A stretch of DNA of 64,000 bases from Eukaryota sp. TZLM1-RC (Eukaryota > Protista > Metamonada: BaSk clade), in the NCBI GenBank assembly GCA_040285825.1, contig JAUPSS010000015.1, positions 1 through 64,000 on the forward strand, written 5' to 3'. Within the stretch, counting starts at the first letter, position 1. The number at the start of each line of letters is the position of its first letter. Under the pieces are notes generated by a model that was not told the origin of the DNA, ran no database searches, and worked only from the letters and a program-made list of their open reading frames with translations. Shown here piece by piece: positions 51,677-64,000 of the stretch. The position numbers and the translations under genes are program-made.

Positions 51677-52889
51677 TTAATGAAAATTTTAATTTATTAT
51701 TAAACTACAGTCTAAAAGTCAATATCTTCAAAACAAGCTTCCACACCATCAAACCTCACAACAGCAATTTCTTCGTAATGTGCACTGACAGACATCAAAG
51801 CTTTCGAAATCATTTTTAGGAATTGATTTGAAAATAGTAAAAACAATACGATTTAGCCACAAGCGACGATCAAAACGCTTATTCATTCTTCTTTTTCACA
51901 AGATTTTTCAAAATCATCAATAAAATTCATAGCAGTTTTTCCAAGACGACCATACAACGATATAGCAAATGGGCAAATTTGGTAATCTACATGGCGAACA
52001 TGTTTCAATTCTTTTAAAGGATTTGCATACTTTTTCCGTTTGTACAATTCGGAGTCATCAAGGGGGGATACTTCAGATTGAGCATTTTTTTCAAGGCATT
52101 TTTTTCTTGCAAACATCCACTGTTACGACATCAACAACATTCATGACATCATCAAACGAGGGCACAACAACATCAGCACGTCGTTTTCCATATTCTGAAT
52201 CTCTTACGCTTTCATTTATATCAAGAGACCTCAACAAAGGTTCTACAAAAGATTCAATATGATAGGAATTACACATTGCATGGATTTGATCTCTGACTGC
52301 ATCATGCAACGTAGAACGATAGGAAATAAATCTATTACAATTAAATAAATGTGATAATGTCAAAACCAGCTCCACATTTGCAAAAACAAATCATTGGGCA
52401 AAATTACAAGGCCATAAATAACAACGCATTCTCATAGCAGTGGTCCATTGGTCGTCATTCAAAAAAATAGGCCAAAAAAATCTGGGGAATTTGATTTATC
52501 AAAACTGCAGATGAACTGTCCTTCAAATCAATCAAAAATTTGCAAAAGCAGGATTTTCTTTCTTAGCCGTGCTAAGTCGAACAATAAAATCCTTGCTTTC
52601 AAATTTTCTCCTCAAAAGATGTCGTTGGAGCTTTTTCAACGCAAATTTTTAATGAATACAAATTTCTGTCTGGAATTTCTTGAATGGATATGGGGAAACA
52701 TGATTGCCATAAGTCGGGAGATAAACTGGATATTTCTTCTCTTAAGTTATCGAGGAATAAGCTATTTGTAGTTTCAAGAAGATTTTTCGGCAAAAGGATA
52801 TCTTCTAGAGAATTCAAATACAAAAATGTTTTCCACCACCAATAAATGCAGCTTTGGTCAAATATTTTTGATGAATTGAATCCAACACC
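51677..52889 (-). mobile_element. Family B 3' 1.2 kb, backbone unit
   Basis: Same boundaries as the other units. Confidence 0.88.
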
Positions 52890-53030
52890 TTTTTACAATC
52901 ATTTCAAAATCATCCAAAAACCTAAAGCAGTTGGTGCAAGTGAACCAAAAAGGAAAGTACAAATGGATACAAATTGTATTTTTGCATGCTGTAGACTGGC
53001 CAATTTGGACAAAGGTTCATTGTATTTTTG

Positions 53031-54961
53031 TTAATGAAAAATTTTTAATTTATTATTAAACTACAGTCTAAAAAGTCAATATCTTCAAAACAAGCTTCCA
53101 CACCATCAAACCTCACAACAGCAATTTCTTCGTAATGTGCACTGACAGACATCAAAGCTTTCGAAATCATTTTAGGAATTGATTTGAAAATAGTAAAAAA
53201 ACAATACGGATTTAGCCACAAGTGATGATCAAAACGCTTATTCATTCTTCTTTTCACAAGATTTTCAAAATCATCAATAAAATTCATAGCAGTTTTTCCA
53301 AGACGACTATACAACGATATAGCAAATGGGCAAATTTGGTAATCTACATGGCGAACATGTTTCAATTCTTTTAAAGGATTTGCATACTTTTTCCGTTTGT
53401 ACAATTCGGAGTCATCAAGGGGGGATACTTCAGATTGAGCATTTTTCAAGGCATTTTTCTTGCAAACATCCACTGTTACGACATCAACAACATTCATGAC
53501 ATCATCAAACGAGGGCACAACAACATCAGCACGTCGTTTTCCATATTCTGAATCTCTTACGCTTTCATTTATAACAAGAGACCTCAACAAAGGTTCTACA
53601 AAAGATTCAATATGATAGGAATTACACATTGCATGGATTTGATCTCTGACTGCATCATGCAACGTAGAACGATAGGAAATAAATCTATTACAATTAAATA
53701 AATGTGATAATGTCAAACCAGCTCCACATTTGCAAAACAAATCATTGGGCAAATTACAAGGCCATAAATAACAACGCATTCTCATAGCAGTGGTCCATTG
53801 GTCGTCATTCAAAAATAGGCCAAAAATCTGGGGAATTTGATTTATCAAAACTGCAGATGAACTGTCCTTCAAATCAATCAAAAAATTTGCAAAAGCAGGA
53901 TTTTCTTTCTTAGCCGTGCTATGTCGAACAATAAAATCCTTGCTTTCAAATTTTCTCAAAAGATGTCGTTGGAGCTTTTTCAACGCAAATTTTAATGAAT
54001 ATAAACTTCTGTCTGGAATTTCTTGAATGGATATGGGGAAACATGATTGCCATAAGTCGGGAGATAAACTGGATATTTCTTCTCTTAAGTTATGGAGGAA
54101 TAAGCTATTTGTAGTTTCAAGAAGATTTTCGGCAAAAGAATATCTTCTAGAGAATTCAAATACAAAATATTTTCCACCACCAATAAATGCAGCTTTGGTC
54201 AAATATTTTGATGAATTGAATCCAACACCGCCAAGTTGAACATCAGAAAAATATGATTTTTCAAAAATTGATGGATCAACAGACATTAAATAAGCCAAAA
54301 ATTGGGTACGTATTTTGTTAAATTGTCTACAAAAATTGTAAGTTAGGGATGGAGGTAATGATCGCAGTAAATGAGTAATTTTTCCAGCATAACAAATTTT
54401 CAAAAGAAAAAACTTAAGATGTTTTTCCAATTCAAGAGTCTTTATGACTTCTAGCTCCTTTTTAATTGAATTTAAATAATTTTCAAGGCTGTCAAGTGTC
54501 TTTTCATGGAACCTAAATAGCAACCCAGAAAGCAGAAACTAGTTGAAGTATAATCAATATATGGAACTTCGAGGGAATTAATTATTAACTTAACATTTTT
54601 CCTAGAATTACAAAAACATTTTTGAACATTCAAATCAAGACCTATGGATTGGTATAATGTAGCAGCTTCATTAGCAACCCTATTAATTGTACTTTCTGGA
54701 CCAATACAAGAAATGTCATCCATGTAAGCTACCACTTGAAGGTCAGAATTTTCTTCTTTTAATTTTTTCAAAATTGGGTGAATTGCACGACAAAAAAAGA
54801 AAGGACCTAAAGGGTCTCCTTGTTTAACTCCTGATAAAGAATCCAGATTAAAAGAATTAAAAATTAAATCAGATGAATTACCATAAAACCTATAAAAAAA
54901 GGTTTCGAGTTCAGGAAAATTTGATTTGATTTCTTTCCAAATTGAATCTCTTTTCACTGAA
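53031..54961 (-). mobile_element. Family B, RT to 3' end
   Basis: ORFs 54472-54957 (GVKQGDPLGP, YMDD) and 53045-54523. Confidence 0.9.
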
Positions 54962-57097
54962 TTTTTTTTTGAAAAATTTTAATTTATTATTAAACTACAG
55001 TCTAAAAGTCAATATCTTCAAAACAAGCTTCCACACCATCAAACCTCACAACAGCAATTTCTTCGTAATGTGCACTGACAGACATCAAAGCTTTCGAAAT
55101 CATTTTAGGAATTGATTTGAAAATAGTAAAAACAATACGATTTAGCCACAAGTGATGATCAAAACGCTTATTCATTCTTCTTTTCACAAGATTTTCAAAA
55201 TCATCAATAAAATTCATAGCAGTTTTTCCAAGACGACTATACAACGATATAGCAAATGGGCAAATTTGGTAATCTACATGGCGAACATGTTTCAATTCTT
55301 TTAAAGGATTTGCATACTTTTTCCGTTTGTACAATTCGGAGTCATCAAGGGGGGATACTTCAGATTGAGCATTTTTCAAGGCATTTTTCTTGCAAACATC
55401 CACTGTTACGACATCAACAACATTCATGACATCATCAAACGAGGGCACAACAACATCAGCACGTCGTTTTCCATATTCTGAATCTCTTACGCTTTCATTT
55501 ATATCAAGAGACCTCAACAAAGGTTCTACAAAAGATTCAATATGATAGGAATTACACATTGCATGGATTTGATCTCTGACTGCATCATGCAACGTAGAAC
55601 GATAGGAAATAAATCTATTACAATTAAATAAATGTGATAATGTCAAACCAGCTCCACATTTGCAAAACAAATCATTGGGCAAATTACAAGGCCATAAATA
55701 ACAACGCATTCTCATAGCAGTGGTCCATTGGTCGTCATTCAAAAATAGGCCAAAAATCTGGGGAATTTGATTTATCAAAACTGCAGATGAACTGTCCTTC
55801 AAATCAATCAAAAAATTTGCAAAAGCAGGATTTTCTTTCTTAGCCGTGCTAAGTCGAACAATAAAATCCTTGCTTTCAAATTTTCTCAAAAGATGTCGTT
55901 GGAGCTTTTTCAACGCAAATTTTAATGAATATAAACTTCTGTCTGGAATTTCTTGAATGGATATGGGGAAACATGATTGCCATAAGTCGGGAGATAAACT
56001 GGATATTTCTTCTCTTAAGTTATGGAGGAATAAGCTATTTGTAGTTTCAAGAAGATTTTCGGCAAAAGAATATCTTCTAGAGAATTCAAATACAAAATAT
56101 TTTCCACCACCAATAAATGCAGCTTTGGTCAAATATTTTGATGAATTGAATCCAACACCGCCAAGTTGAACATCAGAAAAAATATGATTTTTCAAAATTG
56201 ATGGATCAACAGACATTAAATAAGCCAAAAATTGGGTACGTTTTTTGTAAAATTGTCTACAAAAATTGTAAGTTAGGGATGGAGGTAATGATCGCAGTAA
56301 ATGAGTAATTTTTCCAGCATAACAAATTTTCAAAAGAAAAAATTTAAGATGTTTTTCCAATTCAAGAGTCTTTATGACTTCTAGCTCTTTTTTAATTGAA
56401 TTTAAATAATTTTCAAGGCTGTCAAGTGTCTTTTCGGCGGAACCTAAATACCAACCCAGAAAGCAGAAACTAGTTGAAGTATAATCAATATATGGAACTT
56501 CGAGGGAATTAATTATTAACTTAACATTTTTTCTAGAAATACAAAAACATTTTTGAACATTCAAATCAAGACCTATGGATTGGTATAATGTAGCCGCTTC
56601 ATTAGCAACCCTATGAATTGTACTTTCTGGACCAATACAAGAAATGTCATCCATGTAAGCTACCACTTGAAGGTCAGAATTTTCTTCTTTTAATTTTTTC
56701 AAAATTGGGTGAATTGCAAGACAAAAAAAGAAAGGACCTAAAGGGTCTCCTTGTTTAACTCCTGATAAATAATCCAGATTAAAAGAATTAAAAATTAAAT
56801 CAGATGAATTACCATAAAACCTATAAAAAAGGTTTCGAGTTCAGGAAAATTTGATTTGATTTCTTTCCAAATTGAATCTCTTTTCACTGAATTGAAAGCA
56901 TTTTTGAAATCAAGATTAAAAATGCAACTATTTTCGTGACAATTGAAAAACAGATCAGATGTCAAAGCTGCAACTGAAGCTCCATCTATGGTTTTGATTC
57001 CATATTGGAATGGAGAAAAGTATTCTTTAGCTTTTGTTGAAACTCGATTAAAAATTACTGAAGACATCAGGCGATAAATGGCTTCACCAATGGCAAT
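54962..57097 (-). mobile_element. Family B, RT to 3' end, head-to-tail with the previous copy
   Basis: Starts at IAIGEA; poly(A) is followed by ttcagtgaaaagag, the same junction as at 48256. Confidence 0.9.
55002..56702 (-). CDS. Family B polyprotein C-terminal 566 aa (RT YMDD, thumb, CCHC, RLE endonuclease), partial
   Basis: Longest open frame: AYMDD, LGGVGF, CKCGAGLTLSHLFNC, HDAVRD, RRAD..DVVTVD..KRKKY. Confidence 0.88.
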   Translation of the reverse strand: MKKLKEENSDLQVVAYMDDISCIGPESTIHRVANEAATLYQSIGLDLNVQKCFCISRKNVKLIINSLEVPYIDYTSTSFCFLGWYLGSAEKTLDSLENYLNSIKKELEVIKTLELEKHLKFFLLKICYAGKITHLLRSLPPSLTYNFCRQFYKKRTQFLAYLMSVDPSILKNHIFSDVQLGGVGFNSSKYLTKAAFIGGGKYFVFEFSRRYSFAENLLETTNSLFLHNLREEISSLSPDLWQSCFPISIQEIPDRSLYSLKFALKKLQRHLLRKFESKDFIVRLSTAKKENPAFANFLIDLKDSSSAVLINQIPQIFGLFLNDDQWTTAMRMRCYLWPCNLPNDLFCKCGAGLTLSHLFNCNRFISYRSTLHDAVRDQIHAMCNSYHIESFVEPLLRSLDINESVRDSEYGKRRADVVVPSFDDVMNVVDVVTVDVCKKNALKNAQSEVSPLDDSELYKRKKYANPLKELKHVRHVDYQICPFAISLYSRLGKTAMNFIDDFENLVKRRMNKRFDHHLWLNRIVFTIFKSIPKMISKALMSVSAHYEEIAVVRFDGVEACFEDIDF

Positions 57098-57120: not shown

Positions 57121-57521
57121 CCAAATTTGCTGAAGAAAATAAGTGACTTTTCAACATTCCTGGTTCTACATCCAATAAATCAGCAAAAAATTCTGTTCTT
57201 AATGAATTGAATGAACGACAAAAATCTAATGCTGTGGAAGGAGCACAAGATCTCAAAATGTGGGTTATTCTCCCAGTGTAGCAAATTTTAAGCATGAAAA
57301 ATTTAATATGCTTTTCTATATCTAAAGAAGAAATTGAATCAAGTTCAATTTTCATTTTTTCCAAAATAACTTGCAATTCATTCTGAATTTGAGGCACGTT
57401 TCCTAACCAACAACCAAGGAACTTAAAAGCATCACTACTATAATTAGTAAAAGGGACAATAGAATCGTTTATCACGAGATCTTGAGCAGAAGATCCAATC
57501 AGAAGGCATTTGCTGGCATTT
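57121..57521 (-). mobile_element. Family A internal fragment
   Basis: ASKCLLIG to FSSANL; shares the APST variant with the adjacent plus-strand copy. Confidence 0.82.
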
Positions 57522-57522
57522 T

Positions 57523-58565
57523 GGAATTTCTTTTGATCTCTTAAAAATAGCGTGTTCCAGTGTTCCCGAAATTGCTGATGATCTAGCCCATTATTTTCAA
57601 CAATTAATTGTTTTGAAAATTAATCCTCCATTTGAATTACTCGCAGCACGTCTGATTGCTTTAGTAAAGCCTGGAAACGGAATCAAACCTGATGGAATAC
57701 GCCCAATTGCTGTTGGTGAATCTCTTTCTCGTTTGCTGGCATCAATTGTCTTCGATCGTGTCAAAGACAAAGCTTCTACATTTTTGAATCCTCATCAATT
57801 TGGAATCAAAACAATTGATGGTGCTTCTGTTGCTGCTATTGCCTCTGATACCTTTTTTAATGCAGAGGAAAATAATTTTATTTTTAATCTCGACTTTAAA
57901 AATGCTTTTAATTCTGTAAAGCGAGAAGCAATTTTTGAAATTATTAAATCTGATTTTCCTGAGCTATCGAGTTTTTTCTACCATCTTTATGGGAAAGAAT
58001 CAGATTTAATTTTTAATTCATTTGGTCTTAAATCATCTTCTGGTGTGAAGCAAGGTGATCCTTTAGGTCCATTATTGTTTTGTTTAGCTATTCACAAAAC
58101 TTTAAATATCATTAAGCAAAAATACCCTTCTATAAAAATAGTTGCTTATATGGATGATTTATCCTTGATTGGTTCATTTGATTTACTAGAATTAGTTGCT
58201 CAAGAAATTGCCGATTCATATGAAAAAATTGGCCTTTATCTTAATGCCAGCAAATGCCTTCTGATTGGCTCTTCTGCTCAAGACCTCGTGATAAACGATT
58301 CTATTGTCCCTTTTACTAATTATAGTAGTGATGCTTTTAAGTTCCTTGGTTGTTGGTTAGGAAACGTGCCTCAAATTCAGAATGAATTGCAAGGTATTTT
58401 GGAAAAAATGAAAATTGAACTTGATTCAATTTCTTCCTTAGATATAGAAAAGCATATTAAATTTTTCATGCTTAAAATTTGCTACACTGGGAGAATAACC
58501 CACATTTTGAGATCTTGTGCTCCTTCCACAGCATTAGATTTTTGTCGTTCATTTAATTCATTGAG
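57523..58565 (+). mobile_element. Family A RT region, cut by the LTR array
   Basis: Open frame from 57613: RPIAVGE, LDFKNAFNS, GVKQGDPLGPLLF, AYMDD, FLG. Confidence 0.9.
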
Positions 58566-58706
58566 TGTTGTTGTTGAACTCAAATTGAATTAGTAGGTTT
58601 CTTTGTATTTCGACTGATGACGTGATACTCATTTATGAATCAGTTTTATTAATAAACTACAGATTTTTTCTCTCTCCTTCGTGTGTTCATCTGCCTAACG
58701 GCATCA
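58566..58706 (+). repeat. LTR 1 (TG..CA, ~140 bp)
   Basis: tgttgttgtt..aacggcatca imperfect terminal inverted repeat; internal AATAAA; 3' end set by where copy 4 diverges. Confidence 0.82.
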
Positions 58707-58732
58707 ATAATTATTGGCCCTTCTTATTTCAG
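58681..58732 (+). other. Putative 52 nt spliceosomal intron spanning the LTR 3' end and candidate PBS (unit 1)
   Basis: GTGTGT..CTAAC..pyrimidines..TTTCAG directly before the gag ATG; precisely absent in unit 3. Confidence 0.78.
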
Positions 58733-59487
58733 ATGACTGTTCCTTCTGTCAACCTCCGTCTCTTTCTTCCATGAAAGTTGAAAGTGTTCTCTTGTTCCTA
58801 CAAGAGTGGAAGATCTATTCTTCTGTGACTTCTAAGAAAGAGCTTGTTCCAGCAAGACTCTTGGTCGATTCTTTTCTGTTAGAGTCCCTATCTCTCCAGA
58901 AATCCGACGTCTCTTCCAGTGACGATGTTCTTCTTAGACATCTTCAATCTGTCGTATCGTTCGCCACGTACGAAGATTTTAGTCTGGCTATGTCAAAACT
59001 GAAGCTTGATGTCCGTATTGGTGACGTCCGAGAACGTATGTCCTGTTACCTGCGACGTTTTCTCCAGGTAAAGAGTAGGGCTTCCGGACTGAAGTTACCA
59101 GACACAGCTTTTCTGAATCGATTTGCCAGAGGAATTCTTCCCGTAGGTCTTCAACGTTCTCTACTAGCGAGCATTCGAGATGATGTATTCCCAGATCTTC
59201 ACTCTCTTGTCGAAACCACTACTGATGAGCTGTTGGACTGCTCTAGGGTTGCTTCATGGACTCGTGGTTTCAAAACCTCAGTGAATGATGTGGAACGTAC
59301 GGCTGGCACTAAAACGAGGTCCTCTTGGCGCTCTCAGGATTTAAAAAATCAATCGTGCTTCAAGTGCCACAAGCCTGGACACATCTCCCGCGATTGTCCA
59401 TCTAAAATCAAACATGAGGTAAATTATTTGTGTCACACAAACGATGCACCAAAGAGTTTAACAAACCCCATATCTTCCCTCTATTGA
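58733..59487 (+). CDS. gag: Gag-like protein with CCHC zinc knuckle, copy 1 (1 nt homopolymer frameshift near 58757)
   Basis: CFKCHKPGHISRDC; near-identical to intact copy 3. Confidence 0.75.
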
Positions 59488-59507
59488 GCCAGTACTGTAT
59501 TTGTCCT

Positions 59508-59528
59508 CAGAAAAGTGGGAAAAAGTAG
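59508..59528 (+). promoter_or_regulatory. Polypurine tract before LTR 2 (also before LTRs 3 and 4)
   Basis: agaaaagtgggaaaaagtag abuts the TG start of the LTR. Confidence 0.8.
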
Positions 59529-59668
59529 TGTTGTTGTTGAACTCAAATTGAATTAGTAGGTTTCTTTGTATTTCGACTGATGACGTGATACTCATTTATG
59601 AATCAGTTTTATTAATAAACAACAGATTTCTCTCTCTCCTTCGTGTGTTCATCTGCCTAACGGCATCA
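59529..59668 (+). repeat. LTR 2
   Basis: Direct repeat of LTR 1. Confidence 0.82.
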
Positions 59669-59694
59669 ATAATTATTGGCCCTTCTTATTTCAG
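59643..59694 (+). other. Putative 52 nt intron (unit 2)
   Basis: Same sequence as 58681-58732. Confidence 0.78.
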
Positions 59695-60451
59695 ATGACT
59701 GTTCCTTCTGTCAACCTCCCGTCTCTTTCTTCCATGAAAGTTGAAAGTGTTCTCTTGTTCCTACAAGAGTGGAAGATCTATTCTTCTGTGACTTCTAAGA
59801 AAGAGCTTGTTCCAGCAAGACTCTTGGTCGATTCTTTTCTGTTAGAGTTCCTATCTCTCCAGAAATCCGACGTCTCTTCCAGTGACGATGTTCTTCTTAG
59901 ACATCTTCAATCTGTCGTATCGTTCGCCACGTACGAAGATTTTAGTCTGGCTATGTCAGAACTGAAGCTTGATGTCCGTATTGGTGACGTCCGAGAACGT
60001 ATGTCCTGTTACCTGCGACGTTTCCTCCAGGTAAAGAGTAGGGCTTCCGGACTGAAGTTACCAGACACAGCTTTTCTGAATCGATTTGCCAGAGGAATTC
60101 TTCCCGTAGGTCTTCAACGTTCTCTACTAGCGAGCATTCGAAATGATGTATTCCCAGATCTTCACTCTCTTGTCGAAACCACTACTGATGAGCTGTTGGA
60201 CTGCTCTAGGGTTGCTTCATGGACTCGTGGTTTCAAAACCTCAGTGAATGATGTGGAACGTACGGCTGGCACTAAAACGAGGTCCTCTTGGCGCTCTCAG
60301 GATTTAAAAAATCAATCGTGCTTCAAGTGCCACAAGCCTGGACACATCTCCCGCGATTGTCCATCTAAAAATCAAACATGAGGTAAATTATTTGTGTCAC
60401 ACAAACGATGCACCAAAGAGTTTAACAAACCCCATATCTTCCCTCTATTGA
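59695..60451 (+). CDS. gag: Gag-like protein, copy 2 (extra A near 60370 gives an early stop at 60381, probably a read error)
   Basis: Near-identical to copy 3. Confidence 0.75.
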
Positions 60452-60492
60452 GCCAGTACTGTATTTGTCCTCAGAAAAGTGGGAAAAAGTAG

Positions 60493-60606
60493 TGTTGTTG
60501 TTGAACTCAAATTGAATTAGTAGGTTTCTTTGTATTTCGACTGATGACGTGATACTCATTTATGAATCAGTTTTATTAATAAACAACAGATTTCTCTCTC
60601 TCCTTC
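60493..60606 (+). repeat. LTR 3, lacking its last 26 bp (spliced form), fused directly to the gag ATG
   Basis: ..tctctccttc|ATGACTG. Confidence 0.82.
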
Positions 60607-61362
60607 ATGACTGTTCCTTCTGTCAACCTCCCGTCTCTTTCTTCCATGAAAGTTGAAAGTGTTCTCTTGTTCCTACAAGAGTGGAAGATCTATTCTTCTG
60701 TGACTTCTAAAAAAGAGCTTGTTCCAGCAAGACTCTTGGTCGATTCTTTTCTGTTAGAGTCCCTATCTCTCCAGAAATCCGACGTCTCTTCCAGTGACGA
60801 TGTTCTTCTTAGACATCTTCAATCTGTCGTATCGTTCGCCACGTACGAAGATTTTAGTCTGGCTATGTCAGAACTGAAGCTTGATGTCCGTATTGGTGAC
60901 GTCCGAGAACGTATGTCCTGTTACCTGCGACGTTTCCTCCAGGTAAAGAGTAGGGCTTCCGGACTGAAGTTACCAGACACAGCTTTTCTGAATCGATTTG
61001 CCAGAGGAATTCTTCCCGTAGGTCTTCAACGTTCTCTACTAGCGAGCATTCGAGATGATGTATTCCCAGATCTTCACTCTCTTGTCGAAACCACTACTGA
61101 TGAGCTGTTGGACTGCTCTAGGGTTGCTTCATGGACTCGTGTTTTCAAAACCTCAGTGAATGATGTGGAACGTACGGCTGGCACTAAAACGAGGTTTTCT
61201 TGGCGCTCTCAGGATTTAAAAAATCAATCGTGCTTCAAGTGCCACAAGCCTGGACACATCTCCCGCGATTGTCCATCTAAAATCAAACATGAGGTAAATT
61301 ATTTGTGTCACACAAACGATGCACCAAAGAGTTTAACAAACCCCATATCTTCCCTCTATTGA
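60607..61362 (+). CDS. gag: Gag-like protein, copy 3, intact 251 aa
   Basis: C-x2-C-x4-H-x4-C knuckle near the C-terminus; lies between LTR and PPT. Confidence 0.82.
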   Translation: MTVPSVNLPSLSSMKVESVLLFLQEWKIYSSVTSKKELVPARLLVDSFLLESLSLQKSDVSSSDDVLLRHLQSVVSFATYEDFSLAMSELKLDVRIGDVRERMSCYLRRFLQVKSRASGLKLPDTAFLNRFARGILPVGLQRSLLASIRDDVFPDLHSLVETTTDELLDCSRVASWTRVFKTSVNDVERTAGTKTRFSWRSQDLKNQSCFKCHKPGHISRDCPSKIKHEVNYLCHTNDAPKSLTNPISSLY

Positions 61363-61403: not shown

Positions 61404-61543
61404 TGTTGTTGTTGAACTCAAATTGAATTAGTAGGTTTCTTTGTATTTCGACTGATGACGTGATACTCATTTATGAATCAGTTTTATTAATAAACAACAG
61501 ATTTCTCTCTCTCCTTCGTGTGTTCATCTGCCTAACGGCATCA
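61404..61543 (+). repeat. LTR 4
   Basis: Direct repeat ending ggcatca, followed by family G sequence. Confidence 0.82.
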
Positions 61544-61974
61544 CCAGTTTTTGACAATAGTAGAGAAATCATCTAGAAATAATAAAGCGGTTTTACCCAA
61601 GGTTCCAAATAAAGAAAAAGCAAAAGGACAAAGAAGGTATTGAGTATGTGAGTTGGAATTCAGATTATTGATTTTTTCTGTGTACTTGATAATTTTCGCT
61701 TCTTCAGCTCTACGTAAAGGTGAATTATAAGATTGTGCCAGTTTTTCATTTGAGCTGTTTGATACATCAGTAGATCTGATATCAATATGATCATTGATCC
61801 ATCAAGTCGGGGAACTAGCACATCACCACGGCTGTCACCAGAAGAATTTTTGTCAGATTCATCAGCCAGATTTGAAAGCAAAGGTTCTAAAAAAGATTCA
61901 ATCCGGTAGGACTTAAACATACAATAGAGCTGATCACGAACTGCATCATGCACTTTTGATCTAAAAGTAATAAA
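61544..61974 (-). mobile_element. Family G endonuclease fragment (one copy in window)
   Basis: HDAVRDQLYCMFKSYRIESFLEP..SRGDVLVPRLDG..KIIKY; A/D-like but distinct. Confidence 0.8.
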
Positions 61975-62960
61975 TTTTGTTTATTAATTTTCATTTTATT
62001 CAAAACCTACAAATCAACATCTAAAAAATCCATCTCTCCCAAAACAAAAACACTAGATGCAACTCTCTCATAGTGAGATCCAAGAGAAAGCAAAGGATCT
62101 GAAACCATCTTCAACATCCCCTTAAAAATAGAAAACACAATTCTATTTTGCCAAAACAATCTGTTGAAATTTCTGCTAGTTCTTCTCTGTACAATCATTT
62201 CACAATCATCCAAAAAACGTAAAGCAGTTGGTGCAAGTGAACCAAAATGGGAAAATACAAATGGATACAAATTGTATTTTGCATGCTGTAGACTGGCCAA
62301 TTTGGACAAAGGTTCATTGTATTTTTTGAATTTGAAATTTTCAGCATTTGAAAGAGGATTATGAATTTCAGAATTAACAAGCCTTTCATTTGAGGCATTA
62401 CAAGGATCAACAGACATTACATCCAATAAAATGAAGCTTCCATCTAATCCAGGTAATATGACATCACCTCTATTATTCTTATGAAAATCATCTTCAGCAT
62501 TAAACAGATTTGACAACAGAGGTTCCAAGAAGGATTCAATTCTATGAGATTTACACATACAATATAACTGGTCTCTTACAGCATCATGAACCTTGCTTCT
62601 AAAAGTAATAAAATGTTTACAATTTAACAAATGAGTAGTTGTCATTTCTCGAGAACATTTACAAATTAAATTATGAGGTAAATTATCAGGCCAGATAAAG
62701 GAACGAAATCTCATATTCAGAGTCCAAGCAGAATCGGATAAGAGAGTACCATAAACTTGCGGAATTGTTGTTACTAAGGCAGAAGAAGTACTGTCACACA
62801 TATCTTGTAAAAGATTTGCAAAAGCGGGATTCTTTTTCTTGGCCAAGCCAAGTCTAACATCAAAATCCAAGCTTTCAAAAATCTTTGACAATTTTTGTTG
62901 AAGCTTTTTACAGCAAAACTGTAAATTAAATAGAGATCGATTTGGAATTTCTTGAATTGA
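61975..62960 (-). mobile_element. Family A variant, 3' ~1 kb
   Basis: Open ORF 62007-62891 ending LDVDL with several private substitutions. Confidence 0.9.
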
Positions 62961-64000
62961 TTTTTTTTAATTTAATTTTAATTTATTTTCAAAACCACAG
63001 TCTAAAAGTCAATATCTTCAACACAAGCTTCCACACCATCAAACCTTACAGCAGCAATGTTTTCATAATGTGCACTGACAGACATTAAAGCTTTCGAAAT
63101 CATTTTAGGAATTGATTTGAAAATAGTAAAAACAATACGATTTAGCCACAAGCGACGATCAAAACGCTTATTCATTCTTTTTTTCACAAGATTTTCAAAA
63201 TCATCAATAAAATTCAAAGCAGTTTTTCCAAGACGACCATACAACGATATAGCAAATGGGCAAATTTGGTAATCTACATGGCGAACATGTTTCAATTCTT
63301 TCAAAGGATTTGCATACTTTTTCCGTTTGTGCAATTCGGAGTCATCAAGGGGGGATACTTCGGATTGAGCATTTTTCAAGGCATTTTTCTTGCAAACATC
63401 CACTGTTACGACATCAACAACATTCATGACATCATCAAACGAGGGCACAACAACATCAGCACGTCGTTTTCCATATTCTGAATCTCTTACGCTTTCATTT
63501 ATATCAAGAGACCTCAACAAAGGTTCTACAAAAGATTCAATATGATAGGAATTACACATTGCATGGATTTGATCTCTGACTGCATCATGCAACGTAGAAC
63601 GATAGGAAATATATCTATTACAATTAAATAAATGTGATAATGTCAAACCAGCTCCACATTTACAAAACAAATCATTGGGCAAATTACAAGGCCATAAATA
63701 ACAACGCATTCTCATAGCAGTGGTCCATTGGTCGTCATTCAAAAATAGACCATAAATCTGGGGAATTTGATTTATCAAAACTGCAGATGAACTGTCCTTC
63801 AAATCAATCAAAAAATTGGCAAAAGCAGGATTTTCTTTCTTAGCCGTGCTAAGTCGAACAATAAAATCCTTGTTTTCAAAATTTTTCAAAAGATGTCGTT
63901 GGAGCTTTTTCAACGCAAATTTTAATGAATATAAACTTCTGTCTGGAATTTCTTGAATGGATATGGGGAAACATGATTGCCATAAGTCGGGAGATAAACT
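62961..64000 (-). mobile_element. Family B2 variant, 3' part, runs off the window
   Basis: Poly(T) at 62961; open ORF 63002-63913 ending EACVEDIDF; same 3' UTR type as at 50183. Confidence 0.9.

Follow-up and report, generated by a model that had tools for sequence, protein, structure and literature searches.

A Gag-only LTR retrotransposon array in Skoliomonas litria with one unit that lacks a putative leader intron

Why does one unit of a tandem retrotransposon array lack precisely the 52 nt that the other two units carry between a point inside the long terminal repeat (LTR) and the gag start codon? The question is raised by a 64,000-nt stretch of the 95-kb contig JAUPSS010000015.1 (the whole of it hereafter called the window), from assembly GCA_040285825.1 ('Eukaryota sp. 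TZLM1-RC'). The source is Skoliomonas litria TZLM1-RC, a free-living anaerobic metamonad, whose genome measures 31.9 Mb, 55% of it repeats, and was assembled from Nanopore reads (ABruijn, Nanopolish) and then corrected with Illumina data (PMC11316075). The array consists of three units, each of about 1.1 kb, of an LTR element that encodes Gag only, and repeats with a period of 962 nt. We consider it probable that this element carries an intron in its leader and that unit 3 is a DNA copy of a spliced RNA, made in trans, which entered the LTR-sharing array; splicing in RNA, the route back to DNA and any regulatory role are what we infer from the DNA described below.

The array and its 52-nt gap

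Sequence reading and pattern searches place the starts of four LTRs at 58566, 59529, 60493 and 61404; Tandem Repeats Finder is blind to the array, whose 962-nt period is above its limit. The 26-nt LTR end GTGTGT..GGCATCA occurs at 58681-58706, 59643-59668 and 61518-61543 and is missing from the third LTR, in which ..CTCTCCTTC (last base 60606) joins ATGACTG (first base 60607) directly. When the unspliced junction is used as a BLAST query, unit 3 shows a single clean 52-nt gap, and together with the pattern searches this bears out the initial annotation, which had described a 52-nt segment present in units 1 and 2 and exactly missing from unit 3, without a flanking repeat. The edges of the gap cannot slide, as a flanking C stands against the segment-final G and the segment-initial G against the following flanking A, and there is therefore no microhomology and no direct repeat at the gap. 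A TTC microhomology was considered as the cause and rejected, since slippage there would leave AG ahead of the ATG. The ends of the LTR are set by matching 4-bp target duplications at 13 insertion sites, so that the segment consists of the final 26 nt of the LTR and all 26 nt of the leader up to the gag ATG. The same duplications uphold the earlier statement that the segment contains the last 26 bp of the LTR and correct the LTR length, previously given as about 138, to 140 bp.

The gap is also present in a second contig. Another copy of the array, on contig JAUPSS010000006.1 (locus L010), has identical flanks, private substitutions and gap. Along 7 kb, 96 indels separate it from the window, of which 85 fall in homopolymers and 88 are bases added in L010; there are also a few mismatches, which adjoin indels. 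L010 7539-20757 matches contig JAUPSS010000015.1 over at least 13 kb that are identical bar 5 mismatches and 182 gap openings, mostly homopolymer. The match reflects either one locus assembled twice (contig 15 being redundant and better polished) or a very young duplication. We thus rejected the spliced unit of L010 as an independent second event, for it is part of the same 13-kb stretch, whether assembled twice or duplicated. That the gap stands in a poorly polished, Nanopore-type contig is evidence that neither RNA nor short-read polishing created it, and the concern that it might be a product of RNA-based polishing is answered by this identical gap amid Nanopore-type homopolymer errors. Gene models of the contig 6 copy span its frameshifts by invented 25-nt 'introns'.

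The features of the array, all on the + strand, are as follows.

57613..58565, + strand: 3' part of a reverse transcriptase (RT)-bearing element, host of the insertion; the paralogous site on the minus strand at about 57200 (cattAAGaacag) is uninterrupted
58566..58706, + strand: LTR-A, 141 bp, TG..CA, 'ctacagatttttt' variant
58681..58732, + strand: 52-nt GT..AG segment, copy 1 (26-nt LTR end and 26-nt leader)
58733..59487, + strand: gag of unit 1, ATG frame disrupted by a 1-nt deletion near 58757
59509..59525, + strand: polypurine tract AGAAAAGTGGGAAAAAG, 3 nt upstream of the next LTR
59529..59668, + strand: LTR-B, 140 bp, with a TGACGTG block, AATAAA at 59614-59619, a CT-rich run and GTGTGT at 59643
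59643..59694, + strand: 52-nt GT..AG segment, copy 2, 5' end GTGTGT and 3' end CTTATTTCAG, with the gag ATG directly after
59667..59678, + strand: palindrome CAATAATTATTG, 12 nt, perfect, spanning LTR end and leader within the segment; second copy at 58705-58716
59695..60381, + strand: gag of unit 2, cut short by a 1-nt insertion near 60367
60493..60606, + strand: LTR-C, first 114 nt only, stopping at the position of the putative 5' splice site
60606..60607, + strand: exon-exon-like junction ..CCTTC/ATGACT.., 52 nt missing; equivalent at L010 17255/17254
60607..61362, + strand: gag of unit 3, encoding an intact 251-aa Gag with a CCHC zinc knuckle
61404..61543, + strand: LTR-D, complete, 140 bp; right flank ccag.., no match to the left target site TGAG

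Among the three units, only unit 3 has an intact Gag frame. LTR-A is identical in type to a solo copy 3 kb outside the window, and the sequence to its left, ..cattgag, marks the TGAG site of insertion inside the RT-bearing element. Opposed copies of the 3' part of that element form a 323-nt inverted repeat (98% complementary) at 57198-57520 and 58243-58565; the Gag-only insertion interrupts one of the two and the other is uninterrupted. A minus-strand repeated family occupies 52000-56100 and 61860-64000, with spacings of 1353 and 1930 nt, and flanks the array on the right; its open reading frames (ORFs) of 290-570 aa have no Pfam matches.

Splice signals at the ends of the segment

As a reference for host splicing we used 11 introns from conserved genes, namely RPS23, proteasome alpha, Rad21 (2), an ABC transporter (2), Macro, an amino-acid transporter, a PrsW-like protease, a zf-PARP protein and a TnpB-like gene, with candidate introns removed in silico to check that the annotated frames stay open. 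These introns are 22-34 nt long. Nine of the 11 begin with the motif GT[ATG]TG (the start of one Rad21 intron reads GTGTGT), and 10 of the 11 end in YTNAYNNYAG, a branch motif fused to the 3' site. The 52-nt segment starts with GTGTGT, which places the candidate 5' splice site inside the LTR, 23 nt past the AATAAA and 26 nt short of the LTR end, and it finishes with CTTATTTCAG, one base off the Rad21 intron end CTTACTTCAG. The excision is precise and falls at signals of the host type. How seldom this would be expected from position alone can be judged from all 174,122 possible deletions of 20-200 nt in one unit: GT..AG ends occur in 0.42%, and both host splice motifs in a single one (about 6 per million), which is the one observed.

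The signals recur in relatives. In subfamily B (65% Gag aa identity) the homologous stretch is 45 nt long and reads GTATT..CTCATTGCAG, and in the Gag-only element of another species, GEM-RC1 (64%), it is 49 nt long and reads GTATC..CTCACTGCAG. Both retain the GT and the CAG/ATG; the adjoining bases vary, and the altered versions still fit the host 3' motifs. The CAG/ATG itself is foreign to the host start context, AG being outside the eight commonest dinucleotides that precede ATG in 49 host genes. By these host-type signals, an identification of the segment as a spliceosomal intron is supported. The initial annotation had made the same call, and matching host 5' and fused branch/3' motifs, with GT and CAG/ATG kept in relatives, bear it out, but its choice of CTAAC as the branch point does not stand. 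CTAAC is 34 nt upstream of the AG and part of the conserved LTR end, whereas host branch sites lie 6-9 nt from the 3' AG, and the likely branch motif is therefore the CTTAT that adjoins the 3' site. The host has few introns, in very rough terms one for every six to eight genes, and their donors are GTTTG/GTATG (L001, L003, L005, L008, L016-L018).

Several observations weigh against reading the segment as an intron and unit 3 as its spliced copy. The first is length. The splice consensus fits that of the host, but the segment, with its 52 nt, is longer than any of the 11 sampled introns, as are the 45- and 49-nt stretches of the relatives; the host sample is small, and two unverified gene models imply introns of 106 and 118 nt. 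Second, the CCTTC/GTGTGT block is also found in an autonomous GEM-RC1 Ty3/gypsy relative that has no AG before the ATG, and the GT may have been kept for another purpose, for example as a GU-rich element past the poly(A) signal. A GT-rich block 23 nt past AATAAA is where the GU-rich downstream element of poly(A) signals is positioned, and, given the same block in the autonomous relative, it is probably older than the intron; the 3' site seems confined to the Gag-only lineage. Third, if transcription were to start past LTR position 115, the element's own RNA would be left without the 5' site. Fourth, the spliced form is rare, with one spliced junction in 34 distinct ones of subfamily A (that one internal in its array) and none in 13 of subfamily B. 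A search of sequencing runs matched the stretch in three DNA runs and in no RNA run, and the contigs of those three show no 52-nt skip, which says little about a rare variant, since contigs drop such variants. The 20 other arrayed units examined all retain the segment, and oddities of spacing in a subfamily-B array (996, 917), considered as splice footprints, proved to be gene-call shifts.

The element and a possible route of the putative spliced copy into the array

The element is best classified as a non-autonomous, Gag-only LTR retrotransposon, with a Gag akin to that of Ty3/gypsy elements. Every copy has TG..CA ends on 140-bp direct LTRs, and matching 4-bp target-site duplications flank it at 13 distinct sites, with an empty paralogous site at about 57200; the exception is the window array (TGAG vs CCAG). 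Residues 6-228 of Gag align to the N-terminal Gag of polyproteins P0080 (E 4e-29), P0114 and P0117, all of which have PR, RT, RNase H and integrase in Ty3/gypsy order, P0114 and P0117 with a chromodomain as well. Between the LTRs of the Gag-only element there is a 251-aa CCHC Gag alone and no pol of its own, and it is on that account non-autonomous. A DIRS/PAT-like or non-LTR identity, considered because an RT ORF enters the first LTR, was rejected, as the TGAG duplication and the paralogous empty site make the RT element a mere insertion target.

The Gag-only family is young. It is also abundant, its two 90% clusters containing 58 and 42 different Gag sequences, and the sampled copies comprise 11 solo elements and 6 arrays with 23 units in total. 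A subfamily-B array at L012 7971-20634 (contig JAUPSS010000009.1) has at least 14 Gag units with a 957-nt period and continues past the locus. Many of the cluster-2 Gag proteins found elsewhere begin at Met14 (237 aa). The polypurine tract AGAAAAGTGGGAAAAAG is repeated ahead of every internal LTR and the final LTR of the window array and is retained in subfamily B and GEM-RC1.

A pol-bearing element with the same LTR end and leader was not found among the loci examined. An autonomous Ty3/gypsy element lies at L019 2869-7148 (GEM-RC1), and its LTRs are very short, at 110 bp. Its LTR has the TGATGACGTGGCA and CCTTCGTGTGT blocks in common with the Gag-only families, which makes the L019 lineage a candidate source of Pol for them. 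The palindrome CAATAATTATTG across the LTR end and leader is present in all Gag-only lineages (window, L012 and L013 leaders), and that of the autonomous relative (L019 2977-2988) reads CAGTAATTACTG, in which positions 3 and 10, a pair, have changed in a compensatory way, so that selection seems to act on the palindrome itself, perhaps as a site of dimerisation or priming. As for a primer-binding site (PBS), TGGCCCT is retained in the Gag-only lineages, whereas the autonomous relative has TGACC instead, and no tRNA gene for PBS matching was found in the window and ten other loci (about 260 kb in total). The earlier proposal that the segment holds the primer site survives in part: its loss takes away the LTR end and all possible primer-binding positions, but the TGG on which the proposal was built is not kept in the autonomous relative.

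If the segment is an intron, splicing would remove LTR positions 115-140, the whole leader, the 12-nt palindrome and every possible primer-binding position. The spliced RNA would keep the Gag ORF after a short leader, and its own reverse transcription could be neither primed nor completed. Having no priming site, and with no left LTR tip for integrase in its DNA copy, such an RNA could enter the genome only in trans. A cDNA would be synthesised on the spliced RNA following strand transfer from a co-packaged unspliced RNA, and would then join a resident LTR-sharing array, either by homologous recombination or gene conversion, which we favour, or through a change of template between spliced and unspliced RNAs packaged together.

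We favour recombination or conversion for three reasons. The window array is the only one of 14 without matching target duplications, having TGAG on the left and CCAG on the right; the LTR at its start is another variant; and a duplicated insertion site elsewhere holds a single unit in one of its copies but three in the second, clear evidence that DNA-level recombination reshapes arrays. That site (target-site duplication GTTT; L004 2652-3754 and 7909-10937, 5.3 kb apart, flanks 99.5% identical over 1 kb) indicates that array size changes after insertion. No variant marking a conversion tract was found near the junction.

A different route, the first of those put forward in the initial annotation, would make the spliced unit within the tandem during reverse transcription. 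A read-through multi-unit RNA would be spliced at an internal LTR-leader intron, with the first intron kept, and reverse-transcribed as a multimer; equivalently, on reaching the 5' end of a co-packaged spliced RNA, RT would jump to the 3' R of a second RNA. Several observations suit this account: the spliced unit is not the first, units 1 and 2 keep their leaders as the route requires, a 5' site followed by a 3' site is present at every internal LTR, arrays are very common (23 units in 6 arrays against 11 solo copies), 4-bp target duplications are intact around arrays of 2 and of 6 units, and template switching has been proposed for plant LTR tandems (PMC1950507, PMC11899658). However, the mismatched target duplication and variant first LTR mean that the window array is not a simple integration product, array size does change at the DNA level at the duplicated site, and the 20 other arrayed units are all unspliced. 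We regard this route as possible but, on balance, unlikely.

The initial annotation also proposed that splicing acts as a switch between Gag mRNA and genomic RNA, which, from the anatomy of the element and its conservation, is plausible. A fuller version, in which regulated leader splicing separates a non-replicable short-leader Gag mRNA from genomic RNA, arrays spread as multimeric read-through RNAs that need to keep the intron in their first unit alone, and unit 3 is a fossil of this cycle, seems to us decidedly doubtful.

Explanations without splicing fare worse. A plain 52-bp deletion through an error of replication or repair, with GT and AG ends by chance, would fit a single event in 34 junctions and a segment longer than the sampled host introns, but we think it very improbable, given the lack of microhomology, the rarity of such ends among possible deletions and a right end that falls exactly at the start codon. 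Least credible is an artefact of consensus building or RNA-derived reads, which might be entertained for a tandem repeat, hard to assemble, in a repeat-rich Nanopore genome with Illumina correction (PMC11316075) and for a junction not seen in the DNA-run contigs, but which would have to produce a base-exact gap in a second contig with about 90 uncorrected homopolymer errors per 7 kb, choose host splice motifs to do so, and leave the other 33 junctions and the host introns intact.

Comparison with known systems

On our preferred reading, that unit 3 is a spliced copy brought into the array in trans, the locus offers DNA-level evidence that a spliced retroelement RNA was reverse-transcribed and recombined into the genome of a deep-branching, little-studied metamonad. 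The introns of Skoliomonas litria are among the shortest known, and a spliceosome tuned to introns of 22-34 nt would apparently be able to excise one of 52 nt. The putative intron has an unusual position, beginning in the LTR and stopping at the gag ATG, so that a single splicing event would settle whether the RNA is fit to be a replication template; if true in RNA, this would be a minimal natural system for the division of LTR-element RNA between translation and replication, and for the origin of LTR tandems. To our knowledge there is no prior description of an LTR-to-gag-ATG intron, in a Gag-only element, with a footprint in a tandem, in a metamonad with ultra-short introns.

Subgenomic spliced Gag RNAs are made by Ty1/copia elements such as Drosophila copia, Arabidopsis EVADE and barley BARE. 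As in those elements, host splicing here would yield an RNA for Gag production and not a replication template (for the EVADE context, PMC7197481). The introns of copia, EVADE and BARE remove pol from Gag-Pol and leave R-U5-PBS intact, whereas the Gag-only element has no pol, and its leader intron would start inside the LTR and remove the LTR tip together with the primer-binding region.

In retroviruses, the major splice donors lie upstream of the packaging signal, and some are inside R (deltaretroviruses, foamy viruses). The likeness is that the 5' splice site is in or near the LTR and that spliced RNAs lose packaging or replication signals of the leader (reviewed in PMC5035971). Retroviral acceptors, however, are far downstream, ahead of env and accessory genes, and Gag is made from unspliced RNA; here the candidate acceptor adjoins gag and the intron would be just 52 nt long.

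Genomic copies that lack exactly an intron, their template having been a spliced RNA, are represented by the spliced integrated retrotransposed elements (SpIREs) of human LINE-1 and by classic RT-mediated intron loss. Unit 3 would likewise be a genomic copy derived from spliced RNA. SpIREs derive from a non-LTR element through target-primed reverse transcription, whereas the copy described here lies inside an LTR-sharing tandem and has no LTR tip, without which integrase could not have placed it there as an element on its own.

Plant LTR tandems that share internal LTRs often have a single target duplication and are polymorphic in unit number (PMC11899658; PMC1950507; Cassandra, PMC7215508). 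Their LTR-internal-LTR-internal-LTR arrangement is that of the window array, but the same reports describe no unit with a splice footprint. Set beside these systems, the gap in unit 3 is best read as a real footprint of RNA-mediated intron loss, the basis for which is one genomic event, and as a variation on known retroelement splicing.

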